Position numbers and translations under genes: made by a program | Notes under the pieces: generated by a model | The model's database searches: none | Told to the model about the DNA's origin: nothing | The model's input: the letters and a program-made list of their open reading frames with translations, nothing else | Part shown: piece after piece, positions 1 to 63,650 of the stretch | Numbering within the stretch: the stretch's first letter is position 1 | How the letters are laid out: each line of letters begins with the position of its first letter | DNA from: Schmidtea polychroa | Lineage: Eukaryota | Assembly (NCBI GenBank): GCA_044892525.1 | Contig: CM097885.1 | Span: 139,190,001 to 139,254,000 of the forward strand | Length of the DNA: 64,000 nt | Direction of reading: 5' to 3'

Positions 1-3000
1 AATTTAATTTAATTTTTAACCAATCAAATTTGAATAAATTAATATTAATTTAAATAATTTCACAATTTGAAATGAATTTAATTTATTTTAATTTTTAACA
101 ATTCAAATTTGAATAAATTATTAATAATTTAAATAATTTCACAATTTGAAATGAATTTAATTTTTTTTTAATTTTTATCCAATCAAATTTGAATAAATTA
201 TTATTAATTTAAATAATTATACAATTTGAAATGAATTTAATTAATTTTTATTTTTATCCAATCAAATTTGAATAAATAATTATTAATTTAAATAATTTCA
301 CAATTTGAAATGAATTTAATTTATTTTAATTTTTATCTAATCAAATTTGAATAATTTATTATTAATTTAAATAATTATACAATTTGAAATGAAATTAATT
401 TATTTTAATTTTTAACCAATCAAATTTGAATAAATTACTATTAATTTAAATAATTATACAATTTGAAATGAATTTAATTTATTTTAATTTTTATCCAATC
501 AAATTTGAATAAATTATTATTAATTTAAATAATTTCACAATTTGAAATGATTTTAATTTATTTTAATTTTTATCCAATCAAATTTGAATAATTTAATATT
601 AATTTAAATAATTATACAATTTGAAATGAAATTAATTTAATTTAATTTTTAACCAATCAAATTTGAATAATTTAATATTAATTTAAATAATTTCACAATT
701 TGAAATGAATTTAATTTATTTTAATTTTTAACAATTCAAATTTGAATAAATTATTAATAATTTAAATAATTTCACAATTTGAAATGAATTTAATTTTTTT
801 TTAATTTTTATCCAATCAAATTCGAATAAATTATTATTAATTTAAATAATTATACAATTTGAAATGAATTTAATTAATTTTTATTTTTATCCAATCAAAT
901 TTGAATAAATAATTATTAATTTAAATAATTTCACAATTTGAAATGAATTTAATTTATTTTAATTTTTATCCAATCAAATTTGAATAAATTATTATTAATT
1001 TAAATAATTTCACAATTTGAAATGATTTTAATTTATTTTAATTTTTATCTAATCAAATTTGAATAATTTATTATTAATTTAAATAATTATACAATTTGAA
1101 ATGAAATTAATTTATTTTAATTTTTAACCAATCAAATTTGAATAAATTACTATTAATTTAAATAATTATACAATTTGAAATGAATTTAATTTATTTTAAT
1201 TTTTATCCAATCAAATTTGAATAAATTATTATTAATTTAAATAATTTCACAATTTGAAATGATTTTAATTTATTTTAATTTTTATCCAATCAAATTTGAA
1301 TAATTTAATATTAATTTAAATAAATTCACAATTTGAAATGAAATTAATTTAAATTAATTTTTAACCAATCAAATTTGAATAAATTAATATTAATTTAAAT
1401 AATTTCACAATTTGAAATGATTTTAATTTATTTTAATTTTTATCCAATCAAATTTGAATAAATTATTATTAATTTAAATAATTTCACAATTTGAAATGAA
1501 TTTAATTTATTTTAATTTTTAACAATTCAAATTTGAATAAATTATTAATAATTTAAATAATTTCACAATTTGAAATGAATTTAATTTTTTTTTAATTTTT
1601 ATCCAATCAAATTTGAATAAATTATTATTAATTTAAATAATTATACAATTTGAAATGAATTTAATTAATTTTAATTTTTATCCAATCAAATTTGAATAAA
1701 TTAATATTAATTTAAATAATTTCACAATTTGAAATGAATTTAAATTTATTTTAATTTTTATCCAATCAAATTTGAATAAATTAATATTAATTTAAATAAT
1801 TTCACAATTTGAAATGATTTTAATTTATTTTAATTTTTATCCAATCAAATTTGAATAAATTATTATTAATTTAAATAATTTCACAATTTGAAATGAATTT
1901 AATTTATTTTAATTTTTATCCAATCAAATTTGAATAAATTATTATTAATTTAAATAATTATACAATTTGAAATGAATTTAATTAATTTTAATTTTTATCC
2001 AATCAAATTTGAATAAATTAATATTAATTTAAATAACTTCACAATTTGAAATGAATTTAAATTTATTTTAATTTTTATCCAATCAAATTTGAATAAATTA
2101 ATATTAATTTAAATAATTTCACAATTTGAAATGATTTTAATTTATTTTAATTTTTATCCAATCAAATTTGAATAAATTATTATTAATTTAAATAATTTCA
2201 CAATTTGAAATGAATTTAATTTATTTTAATTTTTATCCAATCAAATTTGAATAAATTATTATTAATTCAAATAATTTCACAATTTGAAATGATTTCAATT
2301 TATTTTAATTTTTATCTAATCAAATTTGAATAATTTAATATTAATTTAAATAATTATACAATTTGAAATGAAATTAATTTATTTTAATTTTTAACCAATC
2401 AAATTTGAATAAATTACTATTAATTTAAACAATTATACAATTTGAAATGAATTTAATTTATTTTAATTTTTATCCAATCAAATTTGAATAAATTATTATT
2501 AATTTAAATAATTTCACAATTTGAAATGATTTTAATTTATTTTAATTTTTATCCAATCAAATTTGAATAATTTAATATTAATTTAAATAATTATACAATT
2601 TGAAATGAAATTAATTTATTTTAATTTTTAACCAATCAAATTTGAATAAATTACTATTAATTTAAACAATTATACAATTTGAAATGAATTTAATTTATTT
2701 TTATTTTTATCCAATCAAATTTGAATAAATTAATATTAATTTAAATAATTTCACAATTTGAAATGAATTAAATTATTTTAATTATTATCCAATTAAATTT
2801 AAAATAATTAAATAAAATTTAAATAATTTCACAATTTGAAATGAATTTAATTTATTTTAATTTTTTTCATATCAAATTTGAATAAATTAATATTTATTTA
2901 AATAATTTCACAATTTGAAATGAATTTAATTTTTTTTTAATTTTTATCCAATCAAATTTGAATTAATTATTATTAATTTTAATAATTATACAATTTGAAA

Positions 3001-6000
3001 TGAATTTAATTTATTTTAATTTTTATCCAATCAAATTTGAATAAAATTTGAAATTTGAATAAAATTTTGAACAATTTGAAATAAATTTAATTTATTTTAA
3101 TTTTTATCCAATCAAATTTGAATAAATTAATATAAATTTAAATAATTTCACAATTTGAAATGATTTTAATTTATTTTAATTTTTATCTAATCAAATTTGA
3201 ATAATTTAATATTAATTTAAATAATTATACAATTTGAAATGAAATTAATTTATTTTAATTTTTAACCAATCAAATTTGAATAAATTACTATTAATTTAAA
3301 TAATTTCACAATTTGAAATGATTTATTTTTTTTTAATTTTTATCCAATCAAATTTGAATAAATTATTATTAATTTAAATAATTATACAATTTGAAATGAA
3401 TTTAATTAATTTTAATTTTTATCCAATCAAATTTGAATAAATTATTATTAATTTAAATAATTTCACAATTTGAAATGAAATTAAATTTATTTTAATTTTT
3501 ATCCAATCAAATTTGAATAAATTAATATTAATTTAAATAATTTCACAATTTGAAATGATTTTAATTTATTTTAATTTTTATCCAATCAAATTTGAATAAA
3601 TTATTATTAATTTAAATAATTTCACAATTTGAAATGAATTTAATTTATTCTAATTTTTATCCAATCAAATTTGAATAATTTATTATTAATTTAAATAATT
3701 ATACAATTTGAAATGAAATTAATTTATTTTAATTTTTAACCAATCAAATTTGAATAAATTAATATTAATTTAAATAATTTCACAATTTGAAATGATTTTA
3801 ATTTATTTTAATTTTTATCCAATCAAATTTGAATAAATTATTATTAATTTAAATAATTTCACAATTTGAAATGAATTTAATTTATTCTAATTTTTATCCA
3901 ATCAAATTTGAATAAATTATTATTAATTTAAATAATTTCACAATTTGAAATGATTTTAATTTATTTTAATTTTTATCTAATCAAATTTGAATAATTTATT
4001 ATTAATTTAAATAATTATACAATTTGAAATGAAATTAATTTATTTTAATTTTTAACCAATCAAATTTGAATAAATTACTATTAATTTAAATAATTATACA
4101 ATTTGAAATGAATTTAATTTATTTTAATTTTTATCCAATCAAATTTGAATAAATTATTATTAATTTAAATAATTTCACAATTTGAAATGATTTTAATTTA
4201 TTTTAATTTTTATCCAATCAAATTTGAATAATTTAATATTAATTTAAATAATTATACAATTTGAAATGAAATTAATTTAATTTAATTTTTAACCAATCAA
4301 ATTTGAATAAATTAATATTAATTTAAATAATTTCACAATTTGAAATGAATTTAATTTATTTTAATTTTTAACAATTCAAATTTGAATAAATTATTAATAA
4401 TTTAAATAATTTCACAATTTGAAATGAATTTAATTTTTTTTTAATTTTTATCCAATCAAATTTGAATAAATTATTATTAATTTAAATAATTATACAATTT
4501 GAAATGAATTTAATTAATTTTTATTTTTATCCAATCAAATTTGAATAAATAATTATTAATTTAAATAATTTCACAATTTGAAATGAATTTAATTTATTTT
4601 AATTTTTATCTAATCAAATTTGAATAATTTATTATTAATTTAAATAATTATACAATTTGAAATGAAATTAATTTATTTTAATTTTTAACCAATCAAATTT
4701 GAATAAATTACTATTAATTTAAATAATTATACAATTTGAAATGAATTTAATTTATTTTAATTTTTATCCAATCAAATTTGAATAAATTATTATTAATTTA
4801 AATAATTTCACAATTTGAAATGATTTTAATTTATTTTAATTTTTATCCAATCAAATTTGAATAATTTAATATTAATTTAAATAATTATACAATTTGAAAT
4901 GAAATTAATTTAATTTAATTTTTAACCAATCAAATTTGAATAATTTAATATTAATTTAAATAATTTCACAATTTGAAATGAATTTAATTTATTTTAATTT
5001 TTAACAATTCAAATTTGAATAAATTATTAATAATTTAAATAATTTCACAATTTGAAATGAATTTAATTTTTTTTTAATTTTTATCCAATCAAATTCGAAT
5101 AAATTATTATTAATTTAAATAATTATACAATTTGAAATGAATTTAATTAATTTTTATTTTTATCCAATCAAATTTGAATAAATAATTATTAATTTAAATA
5201 ATTTCACAATTTGAAATGAATTTAATTTATTTTAATTTTTATCCAATCAAATTTGAATAAATTATTATTAATTTAAATAATTTCACAATTTGAAATGATT
5301 TTAATTTATTTTAATTTTTATCTAATCAAATTTGAATAATTTATTATTAATTTAAATAATTATACAATTTGAAATGAAATTAATTTATTTTAATTTTTAA
5401 CCAATCAAATTTGAATAAATTACTATTAATTTAAATAATTATACAATTTGAAATGAATTTAATTTATTTTAATTTTTATCCAATCAAATTTGAATAAATT
5501 ATTATTAATTTAAATAATTTCACAATTTGAAATGATTTTAATTTATTTTAATTTTTATCCAATCAAATTTGAATAATTTAATATTAATTTAAATAAATTC
5601 ACAATTTGAAATGAAATTAATTTAAATTAATTTTTAACCAATCAAATTTGAATAAATTAATATTAATTTAAATAATTTCACAATTTGAAATGATTTTAAT
5701 TTATTTTAATTTTTATCCAATCAAATTTGAATAAATTATTATTAATTTAAATAATTTCACAATTTGAAATGAATTTAATTTATTTTAATTTTTAACAATT
5801 CAAATTTGAATAAATTATTAATAATTTAAATAATTTCACAATTTGAAATGAATTTAATTTTTTTTTAATTTTTATCCAATCAAATTTGAATAAATTATTA
5901 TTAATTTAAATAATTATACAATTTGAAATGAATTTAATTAATTTTAATTTTTATCCAATCAAATTTGAATAAATTAATATTAATTTAAATAATTTCACAA

Positions 6001-9000
6001 TTTGAAATGAATTTAAATTTATTTTAATTTTTATCCAATCAAATTTGAATAAATTAATATTAATTTAAATAATTTCACAATTTGAAATGATTTTAATTTA
6101 TTTTAATTTTTATCCAATCAAATTTGAATAAATTATTATTAATTTAAATAATTTCACAATTTGAAATGAATTTAATTTATTTTAATTTTTATCCAATCAA
6201 ATTTGAATAAATTATTATTAATTTAAATAATTATACAATTTGAAATGAATTTAATTAATTTTAATTTTTATCCAATCAAATTTGAATAAATTAATATTAA
6301 TTTAAATAACTTCACAATTTGAAATGAATTTAAATTTATTTTAATTTTTATCCAATCAAATTTGAATAAATTAATATTAATTTAAATAATTTCACAATTT
6401 GAAATGATTTTAATTTATTTTAATTTTTATCCAATCAAATTTGAATAAATTATTATTAATTTAAATAATTTCACAATTTGAAATGAATTTAATTTATTTT
6501 AATTTTTATCCAATCAAATTTGAATAAATTATTATTAATTCAAATAATTTCACAATTTGAAATGATTTCAATTTATTTTAATTTTTATCTAATCAAATTT
6601 GAATAATTTAATATTAATTTAAATAATTATACAATTTGAAATGAAATTAATTTATTTTAATTTTTAACCAATCAAATTTGAATAAATTACTATTAATTTA
6701 AACAATTATACAATTTGAAATGAATTTAATTTATTTTAATTTTTATCCAATCAAATTTGAATAAATTATTATTAATTTAAATAATTTCACAATTTGAAAT
6801 GATTTTAATTTATTTTAATTTTTATCCAATCAAATTTGAATAATTTAATATTAATTTAAATAATTATACAATTTGAAATGAAATTAATTTATTTTCATTT
6901 TTAACCAATCAAATTTGAATAAATTAATAATAATTAAAATAATTTCACAATTTAAAATGATTTTAATTTATTTTAATTTTTATCCAATCAAATTTGAATA
7001 AATTATTATTAATTTAAATAATTTCACAATTTGAAATTAATTTAATTTATTTTAATTTTTAACAATTCAAATTTGAATAAATTATTAATAATTTAAATAA
7101 TTTCACAATTTGAAATGAATTTAATTTTTTTTTAATTTTTATCCAATCAAATTTGAATAAATTATTATTAATTTAAATAATTATACAATTTGAAATGAAT
7201 TTAATTAATTTTAATTTTTATCCAATCAAATTTGAATAAATTAATATTAATTTAAATAATTTCACAATTTGAAATGAATTTAAATTTATTTTAATTTTTA
7301 TCCAATCAAATTTGAATAAATTAATATTAATTTAAATAATTTCACAATTTGAAATGATTTTAATTTATTTTAATTTTTATCCAATCAAATTTGAATAAAT
7401 TATTATTAATTTAAATAATTTCACAATTTGAAATGAATTTAATTTATTTTAATTTTTATCCAATCAAATTTGAATAAATTATTATTAATTTAAATAATTT
7501 CACAATTTGAAATGAATTTAATTTATTTTAATTTTTATCCAATCAAATTTGAATAAATTAATATAAATTTAAATAATTTCACAATTTGAGATGATTTCAA
7601 TTTATTTTAATTTTTATCTAATCAAATTTGAATAATTTAATATTAATTTAAATAATTATACAATTTGAAATGAAATTAATTTATTTTCATTTTTAACCAA
7701 TCAAATTTGAATAAATTACTATTAATTTAAATAATTATACAATTTGAAATGAATTTAATTTATTTTTATTTTTATCCAATCAAATTTGAATAAATTAATA
7801 TTAATTTAAATAATTTCACAATTTGAAATGAATTTAATTTATTTTAATTTTTATCCAATCATATTTGAAATAATTTAAATTAATTGAAATAATTATACAA
7901 TTTGAAATGAATTTAATTTATTTAAATTTTTATCCAATCAAATTTGAATAAATTAATATTAATTTAAATAATTTCACAATTTGAAATGAATTAAATTATT
8001 TTAATTATTATCCAATTAAATTTAAAATAATTAAATAAAATTTAAATAATTTCACAATTTGAAATGAATTTAATTTATTTTAATTTTTTTCATATCAAAT
8101 TTGAATAAATTAATATTTATTTAAATAATTTCACAATTTGAAATGAATTTAATTTTTTTTTAATTTTTATCCAATCAAATTTGAATTAATTATTATTAAT
8201 TTTAATAATTATACAATTTGAAATGAATTTAATTTATTTATTTTTATCCAATCAAATTTGAATAAAATTTGAAATTTGAATAAAATTTTGAACAATTTGA
8301 AATAAATTTAATTTATTTTAATTTTTATCCAATCAAATTTGAATAAATTAATATAAATTTAAATAATTTCACAATTTGAAATGATTTTAATTTATTTTAA
8401 TTTTTATCTAATCAAATTTGAATAATTTAATATTAATTTAAATAATTATACAATTTGAAATGAAATTAATTTATTTTAATTTTTAACCAATCAAATTTGA
8501 ATAAATTACTATTAATTTAAATAATTTCACAATTTGAAATGAATTTAATTTTTTTTTAATTTTTATCCAATCAAATTTGAATAAATTATTATTAATTTAA
8601 ATAATTTCACAATTTGAAATGATTTTAATTTATTTTAATTTTTATCCAATCAAATTTGAATAAATTATTATTAATTTAAATAATTTCACAATTTGAAATG
8701 AATTTAATTTATTTTAATTTTTATCCAATCAAATTTGAATAAATTATTATTAATTTAAATAATTTCACAATTTGAAATGATTTCAATTTATTTTAATTTT
8801 TATCCAATCAAATTTGAATAAATTAATATAAATTTAAATAATTTCACAATTTGAAATGATTTCAATTTATTTTAATTTTTATCTAATCAAATTTGAATAA
8901 TTTAATACTAATTTAAATAATTATACAATTTGAAATGATTTTAATTTATTTTAATTTTTATCCAATCAAATTTGAATAAATTATTATTAATTTAAATAAT

Positions 9001-10670
9001 TTCACAATTTGAAATGAATTTAATTTATTTTAATTTTTATCCAATCAAATTTGAATAAATTATTATTAATTTAAATAATTTCACAATTTGAAATGAATTT
9101 AATTTATTTTAATTTTTATCCAATCAAATTTGAATAAATTATTATTAATTTAAATAATTTCACAATTTGAAATGATTTTAATTTATTTTAATTTTTATCT
9201 AATCAAATTTGAATAATTTAATATTAATTTAAATAATTATACAATTTGAAATGAAATTAATTTATTTTCATTTTTAACCAATCAAATTTGAATAAATTAC
9301 TATTAATTTAAATAATTATACAATTTGAAATGAAATTAATTTATTTTAATTTTTATCTAATCAAATTTGAATAAATTATTATTTATTTAAATAATTTCAC
9401 AATTTGAAATGAATTTAATTTATTTTAATTTTTATCCAATCAAATTTGAATAAATTATTATTAATTTAAATAATTTCACAATTTGAAATGATTTTAATTT
9501 ATTTTAATTTTTATCCAATCAAATTTGAATAAATTATTATTAATTTAAATAATTTCACAATTTGAAATGAATTTAATTTATTTTAATTTTTATCCAATCA
9601 AATTTGAATAAATTATTATTAATTTAAATAATTTCACAATTTGAAATGAATTTAATTTATTTTAATTTTTATCCAATCAAATTTGAATAAATTATTATTA
9701 ATTTAAATAATTTCACAATTTGAAATGATTTTAATTTATTTTAATTTTTATCTAATCAAATTTGAATAATTTAATATTAATTTAAATAATTATACAATTT
9801 GAAATGAAATTAATTTATTTTAATTTTTATCCAATCAAATTTGAATTAATTATTTTTACTTTAAATAATTATACAATTTGAAATGAATTTAATTTATTTT
9901 AATTTTTATCCAATCAAATTTGAATTAATTATTTTTACTTTAAATAATTATACAATTTGAAATGAATTTAATTTATTTTAATTTTTATCCAATCAAATTT
10001 GAATAAAATTTGAAATTTGAATAAAATTTTGAACAATTTGAAATAAATTTAATTTATTTTAATTTTTATCCAATCAAATTTGAATAAATTAATATAAATT
10101 TAAATAATTTCACAATTTGAAATGATTTTAATTTATTTTAATTTTTATCTAATCAAATTTGAATAATTTAATATTAATTTAAATAATTATACAATTTGAA
10201 ATGAAATTAATTTATTTTAATTTTTATCCAATCAAATTTGAATAAATTACTATTAATTTAAATAATTTCACAATTTGAAATGAATTTAATTTATTTTAAT
10301 TTTTATCCAATCAAATTTGAATAAATTATTATTAATTTAAATAATTTCACAATTTGAAATGATTTTAATTTATTTTAATTATTATCCAATCAAATTTGAA
10401 ATAATTTAAATTAATTGAAATAATTATACAATTTGAAATGAATTTAATTTATTTTAATTTTTATCCAATCAAATTTGAATAAAATATTATCTATTTAAAT
10501 AATTTTACAATTTGTAATGAATTTAATTTATTTTAATTTTTATCCAATCAAATTTAAATAAATTAATATTAATTTAAATAATTTCACAATTTGAAGTGAA
10601 TTAAATTTATTTTAGTTATTATCCAATTAAATTTAAAATAATTAAATTAAATTTAAATAATTTCGAATAT
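1..10670. repeat. AT-rich tandem satellite, 79-bp monomer (~135 copies in the window, open at the left edge)
   Basis: Consensus AATTTAATTTATTTTAATTTTTATCCAATCAAATTTGAATAAATTATTATTAATTTAAATAATTTCACAATTTGAAATG repeats head-to-tail with a 79-80 bp period. Monomers degenerate at ~10480-10670. Confidence 0.98.
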
Positions 10671-21769: not shown

Positions 21770-24700
21770 TATAAGTAATCTAATAATTAAATTACCTAAT
21801 TAATAATTATTGTGAATGGTTTGATGCGCGTGTATATTATAATAATTATTGTATGACTGAAACATCTCTCATATTTCATGTTAATATTTGCATACTAGCC
21901 TTCGATCCTAAAAAGATAAATACTTGAACTGTTATGCCGTAAAATAGATATTAGAAAATTCTAGACTTTGAATTATTTAACATGGCGACCACAAACAGGT
22001 TAGGAATATCCCAATTGTTGCAAAATATTCCTCAACCAAAAACGTACTCAATTGGCGAAGATCTTTGAGAATTTATCATGTCAATAAAAAACTAGTTTGA
22101 TGTGATGAAACTAGATGAACAACAAAGAAATGTTGTTTGAGCATTTCATGTTCATTAATATATTCTAGACGAGAAAGAAAAGGTGAAATAAGATGAAAAA
22201 TATGATTTGAAAACAATTTGGAAAAAATATATAGAAAGGTCTTTGAAGCACAAGATTAAGCGGAAGATTTAAAAAAACGCTTTCAGCTATAGAAAAACCA
22301 ATTTTAGCTGTCGTCGACTACATCATTACTATAAAAAAAGCTTGAGTATGTAATGCGGCACATTGGATTGTGAAGAAAAGAAACTCAGCGTTAAGAAATT
22401 ACAGAGGAATTAATTAAAGCGAAACTTTACAAAGAAGAAAGGAAAGTTGACAATGAAGAAGAACAGAGAGGTCCAACGCGAAGTAAATACGTAAAATGTA
22501 TTTTGAATGAAGTGAATGAAAATGTAGCTGTAATGAATAAAAGGACTTATGCGAAGGTGGTTCATAATAATTACAACCCAATGAAGACTAAACCTTTTAT
22601 AAGGATAATAATTTCCAAAATAAAAAATGAAATTTTCGATAGATCTAATCGATTTCAATGCCAAATTCAATGTTGCAAAGAAGAAACTCATATCAGACAA
22701 AAATGGCAAGATATTAAATCTTGCAATTGCAATGGAAACGCACATTTACAATCTCACTGTTTTGACAGACATGCTAGACGAAACGAATTAAATTGATTTC
22801 AAAGACCCAACAATAACATACATTGTCAATTTTAGAAATTTCAATAAAGAAAGAAATTTTAGAAATTATGGAAATTCTAATAATAAGAAAAGTAATGAAA
22901 ACCTTTGGGAAATCAACACAATGATTGAAATTACAAACAGCGTGTCACAGCTTTGGATGATAAGAATTTACTAATGGAGGATCGATTTAATGACGAGTTA
23001 GAAAACTATCAAGCTCCAATCAAAGGGGACGTGTTAGGAGCTCTCAATATAAAAATAAAATGAATATAAAAATAATTTTAAGGATTTTAAGGATAAATAT
23101 TTAAATTTAATTAACTATGGTAATTAATTAATGATGGTAGACCATTTATCAAGATTAAAATGAATAATATAGAATTCAATTGCTTCTTAAATGCAGGAGC
23201 TAAAATTAGTGTTTTAAGTAAAAGAGTACTTGAATAAAAAATAATATCAAGAGTGAACATTATAAAAAGATAAGTTGTGCTAATGGGAGCGAATCAAATA
23301 TAATTGGTTATGGAAATATTGAAATTAATTATGAAAAATTGATTATAATTACAAATTCTTACACTTTAAATGAAATTTACCCTGAAATTATTTTAGTCAT
23401 TGATATATTAAACGACATGAAAATCAGATTAATGGAATTACATAATTATAATAATGTGGGAACATTACAAATGAATGTTTACTAAGCTTGGAAAGGGATT
23501 TTGGAAATAAAAGAATTAATATAAATGAATTTGAAAAATTGATTAAAATGAAAGGTATTTTGCCGTTACATGAGTTAATAGATAATAAGGAGCTTTTCAG
23601 ATATATTTATGTGGAGAAAATGGGATATAGTATTTTAATTCCATTGATTTAGTAAACGCGTACTATCAAGTTGGACTTGGAGAAGAATCAAAAGAAAAAA
23701 CAAGTTTTTCAACAAAATATGGACAGTATTGTTTTAATAGAATACCATTTGGCATAGCTGCAGCTCCATCAACATTTCAAAAACTCATGTACAGGTATAT
23801 CATAGTTGGAGTTATGATGTGGAAAGAAGCACTGATATATTTACATGATATTCTAATTTTTTCCAAGACGAAACATAAGAAACGTATTGAAACTTTTTTT
23901 AAAATAATTTGGGATTCAGGGTTGAAAATCAATTTCGATAAATATAAATTTTTAGTAACAGAATTAAAATTTCTCGGATACTTGAACAATACAGGTATTG
24001 AAACTGACCCTGAAAAAATTAGTACTATGATTAATTTTAGAAAACCTCATTGTGTAAAACACATCCGTAGTTCTTTAGGATTAACCAAATAATACCGGAA
24101 ATTTATTAAAAACTATTCAAGTATATCTCGACCTTTAGAAAAATTAATTATGTCTACTATATATAAGATTCGATGGTCTGATGAGTGTGAAAACGTTTTT
24201 CACAAACTTAAATATCAGATGGTAAACCCACCAATGTTAGAATATCCGGATTTTTGAAAAGAACTCATCCTTGATTCGATATCATAGGTGCCGTAATATA
24301 ACAAAGAAATAGTTTCAATAACGAAAACGTTATAACTTATGGTTCTAAGAGTTTGAATACTCTCGAGATTGGTTATTGTATATCAAGAAAAGAATCGTTA
24401 TCTGTATTTCACTTTACACAACATGTCAACCACTACAATTATGGAAGAAAACTCACACTACGCACTGATCACAAAGCTATAACATTTATGATGACAACAA
24501 AGAAACCGATAACAGCCAAATTTCAATATTGGATCAACTTTGTGAGTAGTTTGAATATGAAACTAGAATATCGCAAAGGTGAATTACATTCCAATGGCGA
24601 TGCATTATTTAGAATGGATAATAGACCGTGCTCATAGTGTAACCTCAATCATCCAGATGCAAAACTGACGAAAATGAGTGGCAAAATAAGGAAGAAGAAA

Positions 24701-25913: not shown

Positions 25914-27412
25914 TATTAATTGTTAAATAATTTCGACTTATGATTATTGTAATTAATTTATATATTTTTTAATATTTTAATATTTTATTAATTTTATTAA
26001 TTTTATTTATTTTGTTTTATTTTTTTTTATAATAATTAATATTTTTACAATTATTTATTATTTGTAAAATTATTATCATTATTTTTTATTTTTATTATTA
26101 ATTGTATTTTTAATCATTATACTAATAGGATGAATTAGCCTGCACTATGTTTCATGATACTAGCATAGGATAGTGAGTTATTATTTAATAATATCTTTGG
26201 TGAAGGGTTTTAATATTAGTTATTGTGAGTTTTGGTAGTTACAATAATAATATATTAATATACCGCAAGTATTGTCCAAAAAATAATTATTTTCAAACAA
26301 TGTATTTATTTTTGGTTTTGATAAAATTCGACTGTTGAGTAAATTTTTTATTGATATAATTTTTAATCATATATTTTAATTCTAAAATCAGTTTTAGAGA
26401 TTATTTGAGTCATTTTATTAATGAGTTAATTAACTAATTAATGAGCTAATTAATTAATTTGTTTGAATAAAAATAGGACATGATATAAAAAGATTCTGTG
26501 AAGAAAATGACAAAATATCAGTAGATAGTTTTAGTTGGGAATTTAATATTTCTTCAGTTACATAAATATCAATCTAAATGCCATAATGGTGTTTAATAAA
26601 TGTTATATATTTTAATAAAAATATAGCCATGAAGAATCTTTATAAGGAATTCCTGGATTTCTGTAAGGAACATTAATTTTTACTAGAACTTTTTTACCAA
26701 GTCTTTTAACTGTAAGAAATAATTTGTTTTTGATTTTGATCTTTTCCCGCTAGTTTCTTTTGATCTTTGTATGTTCAATATTTTAGTTATAGAATCGTCA
26801 CTTTAGTTTTTTTTAAGTGAATGATGACTAATTTATTATTTTATATGTCAATCGATTATTTTAAGCATTTTATTTTTTATTTTATTTTATTGAAAAGTTT
26901 TAAGCTTTTTAATGAGATTATTTTTATTTATTTTTTCTAGTGAACATTTCTTTACAAAAATTGAAATATTAATTAAAAATATTTTAAATAAACATTTAAT
27001 AATCAATTTATTTAAATAAAAATAATTAAATATATGACTTTAATTAAAAAATTTTAAATTAAAAATGACATCTTTTTCATTAGATCTAATTTTTTTGTTC
27101 TTGGGTCAGGACATGTAATTTTCTGTGGAGAATAGGACCAGTTTGAAAACTATAAATGTATTACATACAATATACACCAACTTCATAAACGAAACACTTT
27201 GGCACACAGTAATACACATATTAAATCAAAGCTTCACTTGATTAAATAACCATATATCTAATAAAATCAAAACCTTCATCTTGACTGGCAAACGCTTTTG
27301 TATTACTTAAGATATTATTTACAGACCCACTGGCCTAAGACACGAAGCAACTTACATATGAAAGCACAATTAACTTGCATCATTCGACTTGAGTAACACT
27401 TAAAACATTATA

Positions 27413-27650
27413 TAAAACAATAAAGTGATAATTTAAGCCTTTTGCTGTGAATAATGTATTTAATGAAAAAATTTTCGACTATAAGATAGTCCTTGTCAAA
27501 TAGATTGTCAAATAGACTGAAATCGAAAAAATTAAACTTTATAAAAATTGTGTATGATTTGAATTTATTGATCTAGTTTTATCAAAATTAAGAGTGAATT
27601 TTATATTAAAGAAATTTATATTAAATTTTCTAGAATTTTGGACTGCTTAA
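27413..27650 (-). mobile_element. Penelope-like element 3'/pLTR relic carrying a variant hammerhead motif
   Basis: Shares ~85 bp with the copies at 39332 and 41884. The minus strand contains UUGACAA-G-GACUA(UCUUA)UAGUC-GAAA. Upstream frameshifted KILENL/INFFNIKFTLNFDK weakly resembles a PLE GIY-YIG C-terminal tail. Confidence 0.5.
27456..27506 (-). ncRNA. Putative minimal type-I hammerhead ribozyme, U3:A8 core variant
   Basis: Core UUGACAA (27499-27493), 5-bp stem II, GAAA (27476-27473), 2-bp stem III, UUC triplet with predicted cut at 27465/27464. Stem I is weak. Confidence 0.5.
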
Positions 27651-33852: not shown

Positions 33853-33994
33853 NNNNNNNNNNNNNNNNNNNNNNNNNNNNNNNNNNNNNNNNNNNNNNNN
33901 NNNNNNNNNNNNNNNNNNNNNNNNNNNNNNNNNNNNNNNNNNNNNNNNNNNNNNNNNNNNNNNNNNNNNNNNNNNNNNNNNNNNNNNNNNNNNN
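33853..33994. other. Assembly gap (N run)
   Basis: 142 N. Confidence 1.
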
Positions 33995-36632: not shown

Positions 36633-38018
36633 TAAAGATGTCAATTATCCGGACTTTCTGGTATCCGGATATCAAATAGCTTAAACATGAAATATCCGGA
36701 TATCCGGATACTATTCGGATATTTGCCAATTCTGAAATTTAGAAAAAAAAATCAAAATATTTTAGTTTTTAAGTTCATTTTATTTAATTCAAGAAAAAGA
36801 AAGTATATAATAATATAGTTTTATTATTTTTAATCATTATTAATTTATTATTCATTATTGAAATAATATTTCAAGAATACCAAAGCGTTCAACAATGGAA
36901 ACTGAAGTCTACTTTTTAATTTTGTTGAAAATGTACCAGCCACCGAGAAAACTCTCTCACTGCTAGTGGAGGTTGGTTGAATCGTATTAAGAGCATTCAA
37001 AAGTTTTTCTAAGTTGTGAGTTAGTTTTCCATTGCCTTCAAGAAGTTTAAATTCTTTTTGTAGAGTCAAAATTATTTTTTTGAAATTTTGTTGGATTTTC
37101 ACTGCTCATGGAAGCTATAGATTTTTTCAATTCCAAAACCAATGTAATCGGTTCGCAAATTTCATCCTCAGATCCGGACGAAGACACATGATTTTCATCT
37201 TCTGGAATTGCATACAATCGACTCATTGTATCTTTTGCATAGGCATAGATTGCTGGTTTCGAAGCATATGTAATATCATCAAAATTATCATCTCGGGAGA
37301 TTGATGAATTTTGTAGAAATTTCATCAAAGATACTACTTCTTTATTTCTTCGTTTTTAAATTTCTGTTTTTAATGACGTCAACATTTCATTGCTCAAATC
37401 TGAATCAATATCGTTTAATTTTTTAAACATAAATTTAAAAACACCTTCGCTAGATAAAAATGTTGCTTGTTCGTTACTCAACTCTTTTACACCTAATTCA
37501 AGTGGTTTTAAGATATTTAACATATTTTCTAGGATTACGAAATTTTGTTCACTGTAATATTCTTTTTCCGTTCCTAATAAGTCAATCAATGATTGTTTAA
37601 TACATTTTTTTAACTTTAGGAGTCGCTCAATCATAGGGACCAATGAGTTCCACCTGGTTTTGCAATCCAACAGTAAATGTAATTCTTTATAATATAATGT
37701 TTTTTTGATTTAATTGTTGTAAATGACTTTTTTAACTATAAGAAATAAAATATTTTATATAAATAATTCATCTACAAATATTTATAATAGTTTTTTTACT
37801 TATCAAAATACGGTGACACAATGTCAAAATTGGTTGACACATTGTCAAAATACGATGAAAAACCCTGTAAAATTCAAATTTTTGAAACGATAAAAATTTA
37901 CTTTTTCGAAAATAAAATATCCGGATAATTGATTCAAAATATCCGGATTTCGAATTATCCGTAATTCAGAAAATATCCGGATAATTCAAACCGATTATTA
38001 TCCGGATTGCCATCCCTA
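36633..38018 (-). mobile_element. hAT (Ac/hobo-like) internally deleted element, 1386 bp
   Basis: 8-bp TSD TGTACAAG at 36625-32 and 38019-26, TIRs TAAAGATGTCAA / TAGGGATGGCAA, and subterminal TATCCGGA arrays. Frameshifted transposase pieces DCKTRWNSLVPMIERLL and PTSTSSERVFSVAG. Confidence 0.93.
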
Positions 38019-39177: not shown

Positions 39178-39331
39178 NNNNNNNNNNNNNNNNNNNNNNN
39201 NNNNNNNNNNNNNNNNNNNNNNNNNNNNNNNNNNNNNNNNNNNNNNNNNNNNNNNNNNNNNNNNNNNNNNNNNNNNNNNNNNNNNNNNNNNNNNNNNNNN
39301 NNNNNNNNNNNNNNNNNNNNNNNNNNNNNNN
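39178..39331. other. Assembly gap (N run)
   Basis: 154 N. Confidence 1.
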
Positions 39332-39470
39332 GTAGCAGCATTTATTAAATTTTAAAACAATTAAATGATAATTTAAGCCTTTTGTGGAGAATAATTTGTA
39401 TTAAATATATTATTCGCATCAAAAGGCTTATATTATCATTTAATTGTTTAAAAATAATAATAATAATAAT
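39332..39470. repeat. Fold-back (hairpin) copy of the 27413/41884 family followed by (TAA)n
   Basis: Arms 39350-39395 and ~39409-39454 are reverse complements (AAACAATTAAATGATAAT..TAAGCCTTTTG). Confidence 0.85.
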
Positions 39471-41130: not shown

Positions 41131-41883
41131 CAACAACAACCAGAAGTGGTTATTTCAGTGACTTGAAATGTGCACTATTACTACTAAACGGGTTTATTTT
41201 ATTTTCAGTTTCAAAAGATTTGAAGCACGTATATTTATGGTCTTTTATATAATTTGACCATAAATGTGATGTTTCCTTAAAAATCCCGAATTTTGTTATA
41301 CTTTGCAAATATATTAATTTCATCTGAGCATTATAGATAAAAATTTTAAGCATATAAGCTAAGCTTAAGAATAAATTCCTCATTGTAATTTGCAACTTCT
41401 TACATGACCCACCACTGTGTCAGAACTTACCCTTTTGCACCTGTGATCAAAATCATTCGTGATTAAATCGATAATAAATATTCACGTCTATTTAGTTATT
41501 TTAATTATTTCAAATCCTATGGAGAGTTAATTCTCTTTAAACAGTTAACCTGGAATTAAAAAAAATTATCAGTAAAATTCTTAATTATTTTGGTCCCCTT
41601 TGATCTGTTTGAAATTTAACATCTTTAATACTGGATTAAGACAACATCAAAAATTTGTGTTGAGTAAGATAAAGAATAGTTGATCTTTTGTCAAACTAAA
41701 ATTAAGATAAATTGGCCATTTTACTTAATTACTGAAAGAATAAGAACAATTATAGACAATTTTTGATTAAGATAGAATATAGAACCGCGATTAAATATTA
41801 TAAATGCACTCGGTTTCTTATATTCTTCTTTTTCTTCGTCATTATTATTATTATTATTATTAGTATAAAGTGATGATTTCTTG

Positions 41884-42060
41884 GTAGCAGCATTTATTAT
41901 TTAAAACAATAAAATGATAATTTAAGCCTTTTGCTGCAAATAATGTATTTAATGAAAAATTTTCGACTATAAGATAGTCCTTGTCAAGGACTATCTTATA
42001 GTCGAAAATTTTTTCATTAAATACATTATTTGCAGCAAAAGGCTTAAATTATCATTTTAT
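41884..42060. repeat. 152-bp near-perfect palindrome (41909-42060) of the PLE-like family, flanked by (ATT)n on both sides
   Basis: 75/76-bp arms around a single T at 41984, differing by one indel. (ATT)n runs at ~41841-41861 and ~42063-42105. Confidence 0.95.
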
Positions 42061-42061
42061 G

Positions 42062-42105
<44 letters not shown>

Positions 42106-43233
42106 TTTAATTATTATTCAGTTAAGAAGTAATACCTTTGTTTTACGAATTTATTACGTGAAGTCTTAACACTATGAATTCCAAAGTACACTAATTTCTT
42201 TATGAAACTGCAATATACTATGTAAAACATGTGAGTGACCTTGACATCACATGTTGACATACTTATAATTATTATCTAAGAATAGTTTCCGAACATGACG
42301 TAATCATGTTGAAATATACTCGTATATTTATTAGTAATTTGTATCTAAATGAATGAGCTGTTGATTTACACTTTATCTTTTACAAAGACTTCGATGTTTC
42401 TTCCTCTTTTCTTAATTATAGTTACCAAATTATTTACATAAATATTTTTTACTATATCTTACAATAACTTGAACATTTACAATAGTGAACATTTATTAAC
42501 TCATTTACTGTGAATAAAAATTAAACTAAATACCTAAAGAAACACATACTTTACAATCACTGTTTTTATAACTATTCCTTTTAATAATTATAAATTTAAT
42601 AAACTTATTTCCTAAGAAATTTTACATAGGTCAGTGATTCTTTTAATTGTGTTTAATTACGTCAATTTTAAAAGAATGTACGCTATTGTCATTTATTTTA
42701 GGATTTTTATGCCACAGAAATGACCAAGGTTGTTAAAGTAAGAATCACATTAAAACATAAGACCCTCATATCTACTTTTATGGACATTTTATTCAATTTT
42801 ATTGTCAATTTTAAAATGATTGAAAATTAATCAAATTGGTTCTTTCAAGAGTTCTAGATATCATATGATATTTATAAGGAAATCACAACTAAATAAAGAA
42901 ATTAACCAAAAAGACCCAAAGTCTAAATGTAAATGGGTCATGTGAAAGCTTGTACATACTAAAAATAAACGTATCTTTTATTCAATGCTAATTTTCGCAA
43001 TAAGTTTTTATTATTTTAATGCGCTCTTGAACAATTTATGACTCCATTAATGCAATTGTTATGAATTATTTATAGTTGACATTTGGTCAATATAAGCTAA
43101 AAACATTATAAAGTTTTTATTGAAAAATTCTCCATTATAAATAAATCTTAAGATGGACTTCCAATATTTGAAAATTAAAAAAAATATTAATTGGATTTTT
43201 CCTAAAAATACCTAAAGATATATCAAAAACATC

Positions 43234-44699: not shown

Positions 44700-47600
44700 G
44701 TTTGATTTCTTAAATTAATAACATCCATAATATTTCATAACAAAACTACATTTTCAAAAACAACATCTAATCTCTCTTATTTAAACAATCTCTGTTTTCG
44801 CAAGCATGAGTTAATTGAATAGGGAATATTCGTACACAAGCATTCAATAAATATTTTATACTTTAATTTTCAATCATTCTTAAATATGTTTAATTTATTA
44901 TTTTAATTATAATCTACTTTTACTATATTACTTAAATCTATTTACAACTGGAAATTAAATACTTATTCTATTTAATTACTTTCACTTCACCCTTTTTTAA
45001 AAAGCTTTAGCCACTCTATGTTTCTTATAAGCCTTTTTCCATTCTCAAATATATCCAATATATCTATCATCGTCTTTGTTGTTATCATTTCTTTTTACCA
45101 GCACTATTTCTCCTACTTCGAATTTTCTTTCTGTTATTGTGTTAAAACCCATATTCTCAACCGACATATTTGTAGACCATTCTTGATATATTCTTTTTCC
45201 AAAAACTCTTTCACTTGGCGTTTGTCTAATTGTTTTCTGAAATGTAGAATTTAACATAAACTCGAACTTCGACTTAACATAAACTCTACCCAATTCTTGT
45301 GATCTTTATCTTTTAGAGTGATATGGATTGTTCTGAATTGTCTTTCGATTAGGACGTTTGCTGAATGATGGTACGGGATTGAAAATATAATTTTTTATGT
45401 TGTGCTCCTTCATTAAATTATCTTATCCATTGCTTTGCTCTCAAATGCTTTACCCCTGCCACAATGTAGAAATCTCGGCGCATCAAATTTTAAAATCCGA
45501 TTATTTTGTAACATTGTTATAACGGTTTTTTCGTCTTGTGATTTCATTGCGTGTAGTGCCACATATTTACTAAAACTATCGATAATTCCTATTATATATC
45601 TCATTCCATACTGACTTTGTATTAGTGAACCACAAGAATCTCTAAATATTGTTTCAAATAAACCTGGTTCTGGCATTATGCAAATTTTCTCTCTAGTTCA
45701 TGTCGTTGTAGTTTTCCTCTTTTGACAATTTTCACAACTTTGAACTACGTCTTGGATCGTTCGTTTCATGTGTCTCATTGAAAAATTATTTGACACATAT
45801 TTCTCAATTTTTATTGGACCAGCATGACACAGTTTCTTATTATACTTTTTAATGAATTCAATTCTTTTTCATTCGGAATCCATATTTTATTGTTTTCTGT
45901 CAATATTACTCCATTCTTTATTATGAATTTGTTACCCTCCTTTTGTTTTATGTTGTTTATGATTTCTGTAATTTCTTTTGAATTCTTTTGCCATTCTTGT
46001 TCTGGGTTTTCTGTCATTATTGCCAAAAGTTTCGTTTTCAGTTTACCTGTCTTTGGATTAAGATGGATGGTTAGGCATTGAACGCATACATTCACTTCTT
46101 GACAATGCATCTGGATTGCAATGTTCTTCTTCTTTCCTAAATTGAAATTCTATTTTCAAACTAATTAAATAATTTATCCATGTCTGGAATTGTGGAGTGA
46201 TAGGTTTCTTTGTCTTCATCATATATGTTATGGTTTTATGATCCGTGCGTAGTATAAATCTTTTCCCATATAGGTGATGTTTAAGATGATTTTTGAAATA
46301 ATATATTGCTAAAAGTTCTTTTCTTGTTATGCAATAACCCACCTCGTGTTTCGACATAGCATGCGATCCATAAGCAATAACATTTTCCTTTCCAGAACTA
46401 TCTGTCTGTGACAAAACAGAGCCAATACGATTGAAGCTAGCGACCGTATTTAATATGAAAGTTTTTGTAAAATCAGGAGACCCTAATATTGGTGTATTAA
46501 CCCAGATAAATCTACTGTCCTTTTAAAAGGACAGTAGGTAATCTGTTACAAATTAAAATATTTTATCATATGAGAACATTATTTTTGATACAATTTTTTA
46601 TTATGGCGAGACTAGATGGTATAGTAATGACAATGCATATTTTTTTTATTAGTTGGCATTGGGCTTTTGTACCAATATAACCTAAGAATTTGTAAAAATA
46701 TTATCAAATATAAGAAAGAAATGTTTCAGGAATAACTGGGTTAATCAGTTTCGTAAATGCACTTTCACATTCTTCTGTCCAAATCAACTTCTTTTCTTTG
46801 CTTGCACAAAACTTTTCTAAATGTTTTGAATCTTCTGTATAATCCTTTATACATTTTCTATAGTAATTGGTTAATCCTAAAAAGCTTCTTAATTTCTTAA
46901 CACGTTTGGGTCTTTCAAATTCTTTGACTGCTTTAATTTTTTCTTCTTCTGTTTTTACTCCATCGTTGCTGATTATATGTCCGAGAAACTTTACTTCATT
47001 TTTCAAGAATCGACATTTTGATGGACTAATTTTCAGTCCTGCCTGTTCTATTTTCTTGAAAACATTTTCGATATTTTCGTAGTGTTCTTTTAATTCTTTT
47101 GAAAATATAAGGATATCGTCCAAATACACTGTCGCTATTTTCCAATTAAGTTCGCCTAATACCATGTGCATTAATTTTTGAAAGGTTGCCGGAGCTGCTG
47201 CTATTCCAAATGGCATCCGGTTAAAACAATATTGTCTGTTTTTAGTAGAAAATGCTGTCTTCAGTCTCGATTTTATATCAAGATATACTTGGTAGTACGC
47301 ATTACCTAAATCAATTGTGCTGAAATATTTTGCACCTCCCGACGTATCTAATAATTCATTTGTATTTGGGATTGGAAATATCGGTCGTTCTGTGACATTG
47401 TTTAGTGCTCTAAAATCCAGACAAATTCGTACATCATTTTAATCTTTTTTCTTTACACACACTAAAGAAGTGTTCCATAGTGATTTACATTCTTTAATGA
47501 TTTCAAATTTTTCCATTTCTTTTATATTTTCATCAATCTTTCTAATCAAATGGGCTGTCTGTCGCCTTGGATTAATCACGATAGGTCTTCCTGATGTTAG

Positions 47601-49080: not shown

Positions 49081-49460
49081 TTAAACATACATGGCAACGA
49101 TTTAATTATAGGAAAGTGGCCACTCAAACATTCGTTTCACTATATATATTTCGACAGTTTTCCTGTCATCATCAGGTAGGATATAATAACTATAGAATTT
49201 ATAGATTTTTGAACAAATTATATCAAATTTTTAATAAAAATATTTTATTCTTTAAAAATTATAATTCAAACAACACACTATAAAATTTTAAAATATTGAA
49301 ATTTAATTTAATAATTTAATAATTATTTAATTTAACATCAAAAATACATACATACAATATACAAAAAATTATTTAATTATTTCAAAACACAAGTATTTAC
49401 TGCATTTTGCACATTAATTTTCGGATTCAACGATTTCAATTCATTCAAATCATTTATCCA
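49081..49460 (-). mobile_element. Penelope-like element 3' relic (endonuclease tail + pLTR)
   Basis: Minus-strand LKSLNPKINVQ resembles the PLE GIY-YIG C-terminal L.P.LN.Q tail, and a minimal hammerhead lies ~220 nt downstream. Confidence 0.6.
49138..49180 (-). ncRNA. Minimal type-I hammerhead ribozyme (canonical core)
   Basis: CCUAC-CUGAUGA-U-GACAG(GAAAA)CUGUC-GAAA-UAUAUA-UA/GUG. It has the complete core, a perfect 5-bp stem II, a palindromic stem III and an AUA triplet. Stem I is only 3 bp. Confidence 0.75.
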
Positions 49461-49772: not shown

Positions 49773-49919
49773 NNNNNNNNNNNNNNNNNNNNNNNNNNNN
49801 NNNNNNNNNNNNNNNNNNNNNNNNNNNNNNNNNNNNNNNNNNNNNNNNNNNNNNNNNNNNNNNNNNNNNNNNNNNNNNNNNNNNNNNNNNNNNNNNNNNN
49901 NNNNNNNNNNNNNNNNNNN
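49773..49919. other. Assembly gap (N run)
   Basis: 147 N. Confidence 1.
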
Positions 49920-59769: not shown

Positions 59770-59971
59770 NNNNNNNNNNNNNNNNNNNNNNNNNNNNNNN
59801 NNNNNNNNNNNNNNNNNNNNNNNNNNNNNNNNNNNNNNNNNNNNNNNNNNNNNNNNNNNNNNNNNNNNNNNNNNNNNNNNNNNNNNNNNNNNNNNNNNNN
59901 NNNNNNNNNNNNNNNNNNNNNNNNNNNNNNNNNNNNNNNNNNNNNNNNNNNNNNNNNNNNNNNNNNNNNNN
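59770..59971. other. Assembly gap (N run) inside the hAT element
   Basis: 202 N. Confidence 1.
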
Positions 59972-60999: not shown

Positions 61000-63650
61000 A
61001 TGGCAGATAGAAAAAAATTATCTGGCGCACAAAATAGAAAACGTAAAGCTGAAAAGAAAAATGAAGAAAAAAGCAAGAAGGTGCTTTTCTGAAATATATT
61101 TGTCGTCAACAATCACAAGATAAAAATCGAAATGAAATGACTCCGAGAAAACAAGTATACTGCAATTTGGAAGAGCAAATGGATAGGAACTCTACAACTA
61201 GAAATGCAGAGGTGCCTATTTTGACTGAGTTTCCACATACGAATGTGGAAGAAACTATAGAAGAAACTGAAGTTGAAACAATTGAAGAAACTGTTGAAGA
61301 ACCTATAGAAGAAATTGTATTAGAAACTTTAGAAGACACTGAAGAAATTTTAATTAATGAAACTTTGGAAATATTAGAAAGCGTAAATTCGAGTCTTGAT
61401 TATAGTGATCCGGCAACTTGGTTAAATTCACATGACTTACGTTCTGGCCGTTTGAGGCAAATTTTGGTTGAACACGGACCAGAACAAATTGAAGAATTTG
61501 ATTTTCCTCAAAATGAGAGCCATAGAAAATTTTCAATGAATTTTTATAGAAGGAGACTTGCAAATGGAGAAGAAATGCGGCGTCATTGGCTACAGTATTC
61601 CAAAACAACTAATTCGGCTTTCTGCTTTTGTTGCAAAATTTTTAATAATAACCAGCGTGTAATACATCTCTCCGATAAAGGATCAAGCGATTGGAAAAAT
61701 ATGTCTGTAATTTTAGAAAGACATGAGAAAAATAAGGATCATTTAATTAATTTTCAAACTTGGAAGGAGCTAGAATTGCGTTTAAAAAAGAATAAAACTA
61801 TTGACCAGGATAATTTGCGTCTCATAAAACAAGAAGAGAGACACTGGCAACAAGTCTTAGAGCGTCTTATAGGTCTAGTTAAAGTGCTTGCTACGCAAAA
61901 TATTGCATTTCGCGGAAGCAATGAAAAATTGTATTCTCCTGGAAATGGAAACTTCCTTAGCTTTGTAGAATATTTGGCCTCTTTTGATCCAATTATGGGT
62001 GAGCATCTTCGCAGAATAAAGAACAATGAAACACAAGTTCATTATTTGGGAAAAGATATTCAGAATGAGTTAATACAACTTTTATCTAAGAGTATTAAAA
62101 CAAAAATTTTAAAATCGATTTCCATGGCTAAATATTTTTCAATAATCCTGGATTGCACACCAGACGTTAGCCATACTGAACAAATGACGTTGATTATTCG
62201 TTTTGTCCATACAAATACAGAAAATTGTGATTTAGATCCCATATGCATAAGAGAACATTTTTTGGGATTTGTGAAACTAACAGATACAACTGGTGCTGGT
62301 ATGACCGATGAAATCGTTCAGATGTTAGCAGATATGTCATTACCTATTGAGAACTTGCGTGGCCAAGGATACGATAATGGTAGCAATATGAAAGGCAAAG
62401 AAAATGGCGTGCAACGGCGAATTCTGAATCTAAATCCACGAGCACTATTTGTTCCTTGTTCTGCGCATTCTTTGAATCTGGTTGTTAATGACGCTGTAAG
62501 CTGTTGTTTAGATGCTACATCATTTTTTATGTTAGTGCAACGAATATATGTCTATTTTGCCGCTTCAACACGTCGATGGGAAGTTTTAAAACGTCATGCT
62601 TCAAACTTGACAGTGAAGCCATTGAGCGATACAAGATGGGAGAGCCGAATCGATGCCCTTAAACCTCTACGCTATCAGCTAAGTAAAGTTATTGCTGCAC
62701 TTATTGATATTTTTCAAGATACTTCTCAAACAGGAGTTTCTGGTAATACTTCACGTATAGAAGCACAGGGCCTTGCTAAAGCTATTTCGAATTTCGAGTT
62801 TGTAGTTTCTGTTATTATCTGGTATGATATTCTTTTCAACATAAATATTACAAGCAAACAACTTCAATCTGAGAAAATTAATATTCAAGATGCTATGAAG
62901 CTACTAGAAGATACCAAAAAATTTCTATTCAACTCCCGAAATGATGAAGGTTTTGAAAGAATATTGGTAGATGCGCGAGAACTTGCTGAAGAATCAGAAA
63001 TTTCCCCAATCTTTAAACAAACTCAGCGTATCAGAAAACAAAAAAAACAGTTCGAATATGAAGCCAACGATGAGCCCATTCAGAACCCAAAAGAAAAATT
63101 TAAGATCAGCTTTTACTTCGCAGTTTTGGATAGAGCTTTAAAATCTGTTGAGCAAAGATTCACCCAAATGTCAACGATAAATTCAACATTTGGATTTCTA
63201 TACAACATACATAATTTGCAATATATTTCGTCAAAGAAAATATTAGAGGATTGTCTTAAACTGGAAAATTTTTTACGGCACGATGATTCTAAAGATATTG
63301 ATGGTACAGATTTATTGAACGAATTGATATTTATAGCTAGACATATTCCAAAAAACTTATTGCCGGAAGATGTACTTAATTATATTTGTAAAAATAATAT
63401 AGTGGACAGCGTTCCAAATATATTTGTTGCTTTGCGAATTTTATTAACCCTACCAGTTTCTGTGGCAAGCGGTGAACGAAGCTTTTCGAAGCTTAAACAG
63501 ATCAAAACATATATAAGATCTACAATGTCACAAGAACGGCTTGTGGGATTAGCAATATTGTCGATTGAACACGAAATGGCGCGTGATATAGATACGAAGT
63601 TGCTGCTTGAAGATTTCGCTAAACTAAAAGCACGAAAAATTAAATTTTAA
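61000..63650 (+). CDS. hAT transposase (TTF-type Zn finger, DDE, dimerization domain); 837-aa ORF 61137-63650, probable true start 61000 with one frameshift
   Basis: AFCFCCKIF/RHEK..H Zn finger, ILDCTPD, GQGYDNGSNM, CSAHSLNL, TRWESR and SVASGERSFSKLK. MADRKKLSGAQNRKRK at 61000 joins in frame if one base is added at the A6 run ~61068-73. Confidence 0.93.

Follow-up and report, generated by a model that had tools for sequence, protein, structure and literature searches.

Introduction

Nearly all known hammerhead ribozymes carry C3 and G8 at positions 3 and 8 of the core. These bases form a tertiary Watson-Crick pair and can be exchanged, as stated in the passage of PMC3884650 that cites Martick & Scott (2006), Przybilski & Hammann (2007b), and Nelson & Uhlenbeck (2008b). 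Minimal hammerheads have been described in the pLTRs of Penelope-like elements (PMC4209133; Cervera & de la Pena, 2014). Helix II measures 7-8 bp in those of S. mansoni and 6 bp in those of D. virilis; helix I measures 4-5 bp, except in D. virilis, where it has 2 bp. A U3-A8 covariant core gave approximately 1,300 matches in Schistosoma mansoni, and natural U3-A8 variants are present in the Penelope elements of Cercyon. Three further features, a nucleotide between 9 and 10.1, the pair G10.1-C11.1, and complementary 15.2-16.2, arose independently of the descriptor used in that work. Most of the motifs come from truncated elements and stand singly at dispersed sites, and some are paired, with one motif on each strand. 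Activity in vitro was low and confined to dimers; palindromic 15.2-16.2 and loop 3 allow a dimeric helix III to form. A U3-A8 core with a bulged base is therefore not new, having been in the literature since 2014 (PMC4209133).

The insertions of Penelope elements have been characterized separately (PMC8557442; Craig et al., 2021). They show strong 5′ truncation and a directly adjacent inverted copy that is also 5′-truncated, together with a tail of 30-40 bp at one end only, a bias towards microsatellites, and a hammerhead near the 3′ end.

The window investigated here is a 64-kb stretch of Schmidtea polychroa DNA, for which an earlier note had proposed a ribozyme of the Penelope type. Both the published layout of the motif and the published architecture of the insertions are found at this locus, but a complete or working ribozyme is not supported, helix I being 0-2 bp. 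The sequences are probably very short, 5′-truncated 3′ ends of Penelope-like elements, inserted singly or head-to-head in ATT microsatellites and carrying an inactive relic of a U3-A8 motif.

Three copies of a short non-coding repeat

The repeat family consists of a non-coding unit of about 93 nt with the heptamer TTGACAA at its inner end, and blastn comparisons identified three copies in the window. Copy A is a single 93-nt arm on the minus strand (27407-27499), with 93-95 % identity to copy B. The homology stops exactly at 27499, so that the heptamer forms the 5′ end of the sense (minus) arm. When the sequence upstream of copy A was compared with the other arm of copy B and with the reverse complement of copy A itself, no second, decayed arm was found beyond chance, 56-59 % of shuffles scoring equally well or better.

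Copy B (41902-42067) is a near-perfect palindrome of 166 nt, made up of two head-to-head arms that were recognized as inverted repeats. These agree over 62 nt at 95 % and over the inner 29 nt at 100 %. The centre of the palindrome is base 41984, which is core position 6 of the motif, and a 21-mer of the motif is present on both strands. The TTG of TTGACAA doubles as the palindromic complement of CAA; because the heptamer sits at the palindrome centre, T3 and A9, T4 and A8, and G5 and C7 are complementary. On the plus strand the heptamer reads TTGTCAA, with U at the invariant A6, and only the minus strand fits the core. This palindromic setting was absent from the earlier note.

Copy C (39332-39463, minus strand) is a shorter foldback with arms of approximately 55 nt that are 83 % self-complementary, and it does not have any of the hammerhead-like part. 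Its outer arms are the same as those of copy B, with some 67 central nucleotides gone. The last base of the antisense arm lies opposite A1.1, and the sense arm restarts about 7 nt later, in a place where the local sequence is self-complementary. Copy C has an (ATT)6 flank and abuts a masked run of N. There are four such runs, of 142-202 nt (33853-33994, 39178-39331, 49773-49919, and 59770-59971), one of which cuts the tail of copy C.

On one side only, copy B has a tail of about 35 nt (41867-41901, minus strand), lying 3′ of the sense arm; the tail of copy C has at least 41884-41901 in common with it. The outer end of the copy B tail (41867-41885) is an inverted 14/19 match of the outer end of the arm (42048-42066) and carries the CACTTTAT variant, as in copy A; the tail thus seems to include part of a further copy of the terminus of the arm.

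An (ATT)n microsatellite lies on either side of copy B, at 41841-41866 and at 42063-42118 (TRF period 3, 18.3 copies), and the insertion of approximately 200 bp therefore sits within a single (ATT)n microsatellite. By a rough estimate ATT repeats make up about 1 % of the window, yet they adjoin two of the three copies, and the association is therefore a real one. Target-site duplications are unreadable at all three copies, the flanks being microsatellite in copy B, masked in copy C, and unmatched in copy A. Likewise, blastn revealed no larger repeat common to the three copies, homology being limited to the arm and, in copies B and C, the short tail. Copies A and B have a common inner boundary, which could mark the fixed end of an element or, equally well, a hot spot of truncation.

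The hammerhead-like motif

Read directly on the minus strand from 27506 to 27456, the letters of copy A agree with those transcribed in the earlier note, and the layout given there, U3/A8, an extra nucleotide, a 5-bp stem II, GAAA, a 2-bp stem III, and UUC, is confirmed. The motif occupies 27465-27499 (U3UGACA8A9, an extra G, stem II, GAAA, helix III, and C17). It begins with the core heptamer TTGACAA at 27499-27493 and the extra G that follows A9 at 27492. The stem II hairpin, GACTA/TCTTA/TAGTC, is at 27491-27477 and has 5 bp, or 6 bp if the loop is reduced to 3 nt. There follow GAAA (27476-27473), A (27472), six T (27471-27466), and C17 (27465). On the same strand ATTAAATAC begins at 27464, immediately after C17. 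Helix III consists of two A/U pairs with a U4 loop, the triplet is UUC, and cleavage would be predicted at 27465/27464. The 12-bp duplication of the core that had been noted earlier is real; it comprises two tandem copies of TCTATTTGACAA (27516-27505 and 27504-27493, minus strand) and straddles the point at which the flank meets the element's inner end.

A second motif had been placed on the minus strand near 41950-41987. It is present in copy B, running from 41987 to 41954 with its extra G at 41980, and is the same as that of copy A except for five T in place of six.

In both copies the hammerhead core is in order on the minus strand (U4 G5 A6, A9, G12 A13 A14, A15.1-U16.1, and H17), and positions 3 and 8 are U3 and A8, for which a Watson-Crick pair is possible. 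G10.1-C11.1 closes a perfect helix II of 5-6 bp, and both 15.1/16.1 and 15.2/16.2 are A-U pairs. The three motif-bearing arms are identical except for the length of the T run, with no covariation among these few arms.

The motif is like the minimal hammerheads of Penelope elements (PMC4209133) in its U3-A8 core, the unpaired nucleotide between A9 and G10.1, and the G10.1-C11.1 closure of helix II. At 5-6 bp, helix II is above the canonical 4 bp. Helix III is likewise tiny, with complementary 15.2/16.2, the cleavage site is of the UH type, and the occurrence as dispersed single motifs and opposite-strand pairs is also as described. It is unlike them in that helix I has 0-2 bp rather than 4-5 bp and loop 3 is a run of U rather than a palindrome. 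The motif is also placed at the truncated end of the unit, with no pLTR or ORF context and no covariation.

A further hammerhead-like motif, with a canonical core, is present on the minus strand at 49139-49175. It has CTGATGA, an extra T, a 5-bp stem II, GAAA, an 8-nt AT palindrome, and a 3-bp helix I. The 7-nt core, single extra base, 5-bp GAC...GUC stem II, GAAA, and A/U helix III are features that it has in common with copies A and B. It differs in having C3/G8, a perfectly palindromic 8-nt helix III segment, and the 3-bp helix I, and there is no sequence homology to the repeat family outside the motif. Its position, at 49175, is only 7 kb from the family, and its similar build shows that such elements exist in the region.

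Frequency of the motif relative to chance

Both strands of the 64-kb window were searched with a descriptor modelled on the published minimal-hammerhead search, which specified NTGANNA, 0-1 extra nucleotides, a G-C-closed stem II of at least 4 bp, and then GAA. Three matches were found in the entire window, these being copy A, copy B, and the canonical CTGATGA site at 49175. In 200 dinucleotide shuffles of the non-satellite 53 kb, the U3-A8 form averaged 0.055 matches, any Watson-Crick 3-8 pair 0.105, and any NTGANNA core 0.28. No descriptor match was present in the reversed window, which keeps the hairpin content.

As members of a single repeat family, copies A and B count as one independent event, with p of approximately 0.05 per window. 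A15.1, complementary 15.2/16.2, U16.1, and C17 are all outside the descriptor and reduce the chance level further. The U3-A8 motif exceeds chance, though not overwhelmingly so for a genome-wide scan: at 0.055 per window, some tens of chance matches are expected over hundreds of windows, and the motif by itself is therefore no proof.

Rfam gave no hammerhead match, either at gathering score or at E≤10, in the whole window or in 161-nt slices. As the site at 49175 was also missed, in spite of its canonical core, the models are blind to the minimal class and this negative result is uninformative. The best Rfam match on copy B was the rhtB sRNA, at 31 bits, which reflects the hairpin only.

Helix I, folding, and expected activity

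The weak stem I that had been pointed out previously is borne out by the sequence. In copy A, helix I has 2 bp (U2.1-A1.1 and A2.2-U1.2) followed by mismatches, and in copy B none of the first three pairs can form. The homology within the family starts at U3; the repeat as seen in the window is thus without the 5′ strand needed for helix I. By analogy with the D. virilis Penelope motif, which also has only 2 bp, copy A alone may be considered borderline for this helix.

Loop 3 of the motif is UUU or UUUU in these copies and is not palindromic, so that a dimeric helix III would consist of 2 bp, 3-4 U-U mismatches, and 2 bp. The sole perfect palindrome is AAAAUUUU, which could pair only at the expense of A13 and A14. 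When copy A was constrained to the hammerhead fold, the energy was +3.9 kcal/mol, as against -5.8 for the MFE fold, in which the core nucleotides U4, G5, A6, and G12-A14 are paired. Stem II of copy A did not form when it was folded in a longer context. Copy B RNA folds into a perfect 80-bp hairpin of -106.1 kcal/mol (z = -23). The hammerhead fold was never favoured in either copy, and self-cleavage of copies A and B would not be expected on the basis of these models.

Coding context and further copies

No RT or GIY-YIG ORF is present within several kilobases of copy A, B, or C, the nearby Pfam matches being to LTR-type RT/RNase H and to hAT only. The linkage of the family to a PLE RT/GIY-YIG ORF, which the earlier note had put forward as a check, is thus not seen at any copy in the window. 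The absence of a linked ORF is to be expected for short truncated insertions. Copies B and C are 2.5 kb apart and in the same orientation; the possibility that they bracket a Penelope ORF was rejected, since there is no ORF of at least 40 aa with a Penelope signal between them.

Neither the 21-mer nor the 23-mer was matched when metagenome and viral contigs were scanned for exact patterns. With the 19-mer there were 12 matches of 19-31 nt, all due to chance. Family copies were also absent from the 3-4 kb metagenome contigs that carry the hAT protein P0001.

Origin of the repeat family

Architecture and motif together point to a Penelope ancestry. The family shows all four hallmarks of Penelope insertions, in that units are truncated at the 5′ end and accompanied by an inverted truncated neighbour, the tail is confined to one side, and the target is a microsatellite. 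The head-to-head truncated copies, the one-sided tail of about 35 nt, and the location inside or beside (ATT)n are as described for these elements (PMC8557442). The family departs from that description in that its arms are only about 55-85 nt, equal in length, and perfectly palindromic, with no full-length partner or ORF. In addition, the microsatellite bias reported there is towards (TA)n and (CA)n, whereas here it is (ATT)n. The points that stand against a Penelope origin are the lack of an RT/GIY-YIG ORF beside any copy, the failure to find further copies in metagenome and viral contigs, the lack of covariation among the only three copies in the window, and a loop 3 formed by a U run instead of the palindrome typical of Penelope minimal hammerheads.

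If these are truncated Penelope-like 3′ ends, the unit would have been inserted singly, as in copy A, or as head-to-head inverted pairs, as in copies B and C, with ATT/AAT microsatellites as the preferred targets. Its inner end would retain the 3′ two-thirds of a U3-A8 minimal hammerhead, that is the core, bulged base, helix II, GAAA, mini helix III, and triplet. We infer that the nascent cDNA may snap back at the near-palindromic TTGACAA and copy itself, giving rise to a copy B centred on core position 6; the heptamer as snap-back point would explain why copy B is centred on the core. The centring on a quasi-palindromic U3-A8 heptamer hints that the core variant itself may promote snap-back of the cDNA. 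The antisense arm of copy C, which ends opposite A1.1, would be compatible with cDNA made on cleaved RNA. An end at this base has a probability of approximately 7 % by chance, and a near-symmetrical central deletion of a B-like palindrome would explain it equally well.

A different account places the family among foldback or MITE-type DNA elements, or among palindromic repeats of some other non-retro kind, the nested hairpins of which resemble a hammerhead by chance. Copy B would then be the complete element, copy C a derivative that has lost its centre, and copy A half an element. Long palindromes often lose their centre. The nearly perfect 166-nt palindrome of copy B, the shorter copy C with the same outer arms, and the common inner boundary at which copies A and B end would all be accounted for, as would the conservation within the family of the outer arm rather than the motif. 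The two termini of the copy B insertion are, moreover, inverted 14/19 matches, the window contains active hAT transposons, and a scan of many windows is expected to yield a few tens of chance U3-A8 matches. Like foldback elements and MITEs, the repeats are small, non-coding, AT-rich, and almost entirely inverted repeat. They are unlike them in their asymmetric tail, which is unique to one side in copies B and C and does not suit a TIR-bounded element, and also in the lack of any recognizable target-site duplication and of matching transposase termini. The series of heptamer, bulged base, G-C-closed hairpin, GAAA, A15.1, U16.1, and C17, correct in both order and spacing, is very unlikely to arise by chance, even in hairpin-rich sequence. 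This origin is regarded as less likely than a Penelope one.

Improbable, too, is a working ribozyme of the minimal type-I class, with a compensatory U3:A8 pair and self-cleavage after C17 (27465/27464). It would process the transcripts of a Penelope-like element and might act in dimeric form or with the aid of host factors. The core is canonical except at positions 3 and 8, which stay Watson-Crick, and the exchangeability of C3-G8 is presented as established by the work cited in that passage of PMC3884650. Natural U3-A8 cores occur in Cercyon Penelope elements, the D. virilis Penelope motif has a helix I of only 2 bp (PMC4209133), and the antisense arm of copy C ends opposite the first base past the predicted cut. 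In contrast, copy A has 2 bp of helix I and copy B none, there is no tandem partner for a dimer, in which the U run of the helix III loop would in any case introduce mismatches, and the favoured folds pair the core (copy A) or bury it in the 80-bp duplex (copy B). Even bona fide Penelope minimal hammerheads cleave poorly in vitro (PMC4209133). A related proposal, which we consider very improbable, is a working ribozyme in a short non-autonomous element dependent on Penelope. The A/U-rich 3′ end of one unit in a tandem array (…UUUUAAA) would provide the next with a 5-bp helix I, and the foldbacks would have formed by snap-back at the core (copy B) or at the self-cleaved 5′ end (copy C). Were this so, copies B and C would be a genomic footprint of minimal-hammerhead cleavage in vivo. 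It is also very improbable that the hammerhead likeness is irrelevant and that the 80-bp stem of copy B, if transcribed, feeds Dicer to produce small RNAs. The fold of -106 kcal/mol (z = -23) is in keeping with such a hairpin-RNA locus, as are weak, sub-threshold matches of the foldbacks to miRNA-type Rfam families, for example mir-208 on copy C (20.2 bits, E = 6.9). These matches are far under the gathering scores, however, and the content of the stem differs between copies B and C, so that there would be no conserved mature small RNA. A hairpin-RNA locus would also be compatible with either model of origin and so would not provide an alternative to them.

As truncated Penelope-like 3′ ends, the copies would be a further family among the minimal hammerhead motifs scattered in their thousands by such elements through invertebrate genomes, and their value would lie mainly in annotation. 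Motifs that are cut in or just before the core and hidden in a long hairpin should not be counted as ribozymes unless helix I and a family consensus are present.

Surrounding sequence

The first sixth of the window (1-10664) is a satellite of 79 bp in approximately 135 tandem copies, with a 92 % match between copies and a GC content of about 10 %. Towards the other end (61137-63650, plus strand) there is an intact ORF of 837 aa for a hAT-type transposase, with DUF4371 and a hAT dimerisation domain. No record was found of this exact ORF sequence, the nearest match being P0001, an 883-aa protein that is 98 % identical and is encoded on contigs of 3-4 kb from JGI, ENA, and Logan metagenome samples. 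These contigs indicate that the hAT element is multi-copy and that the samples contain host DNA of this species or of one close to it. Broken pieces of LTR-retrotransposon RT/RNase H and a fragment of a hAT dimerisation domain are found at 23787-24637 (plus strand), 46704-47216 (minus strand), and 36848-37102 (minus strand), and the region as a whole is a transposon graveyard.
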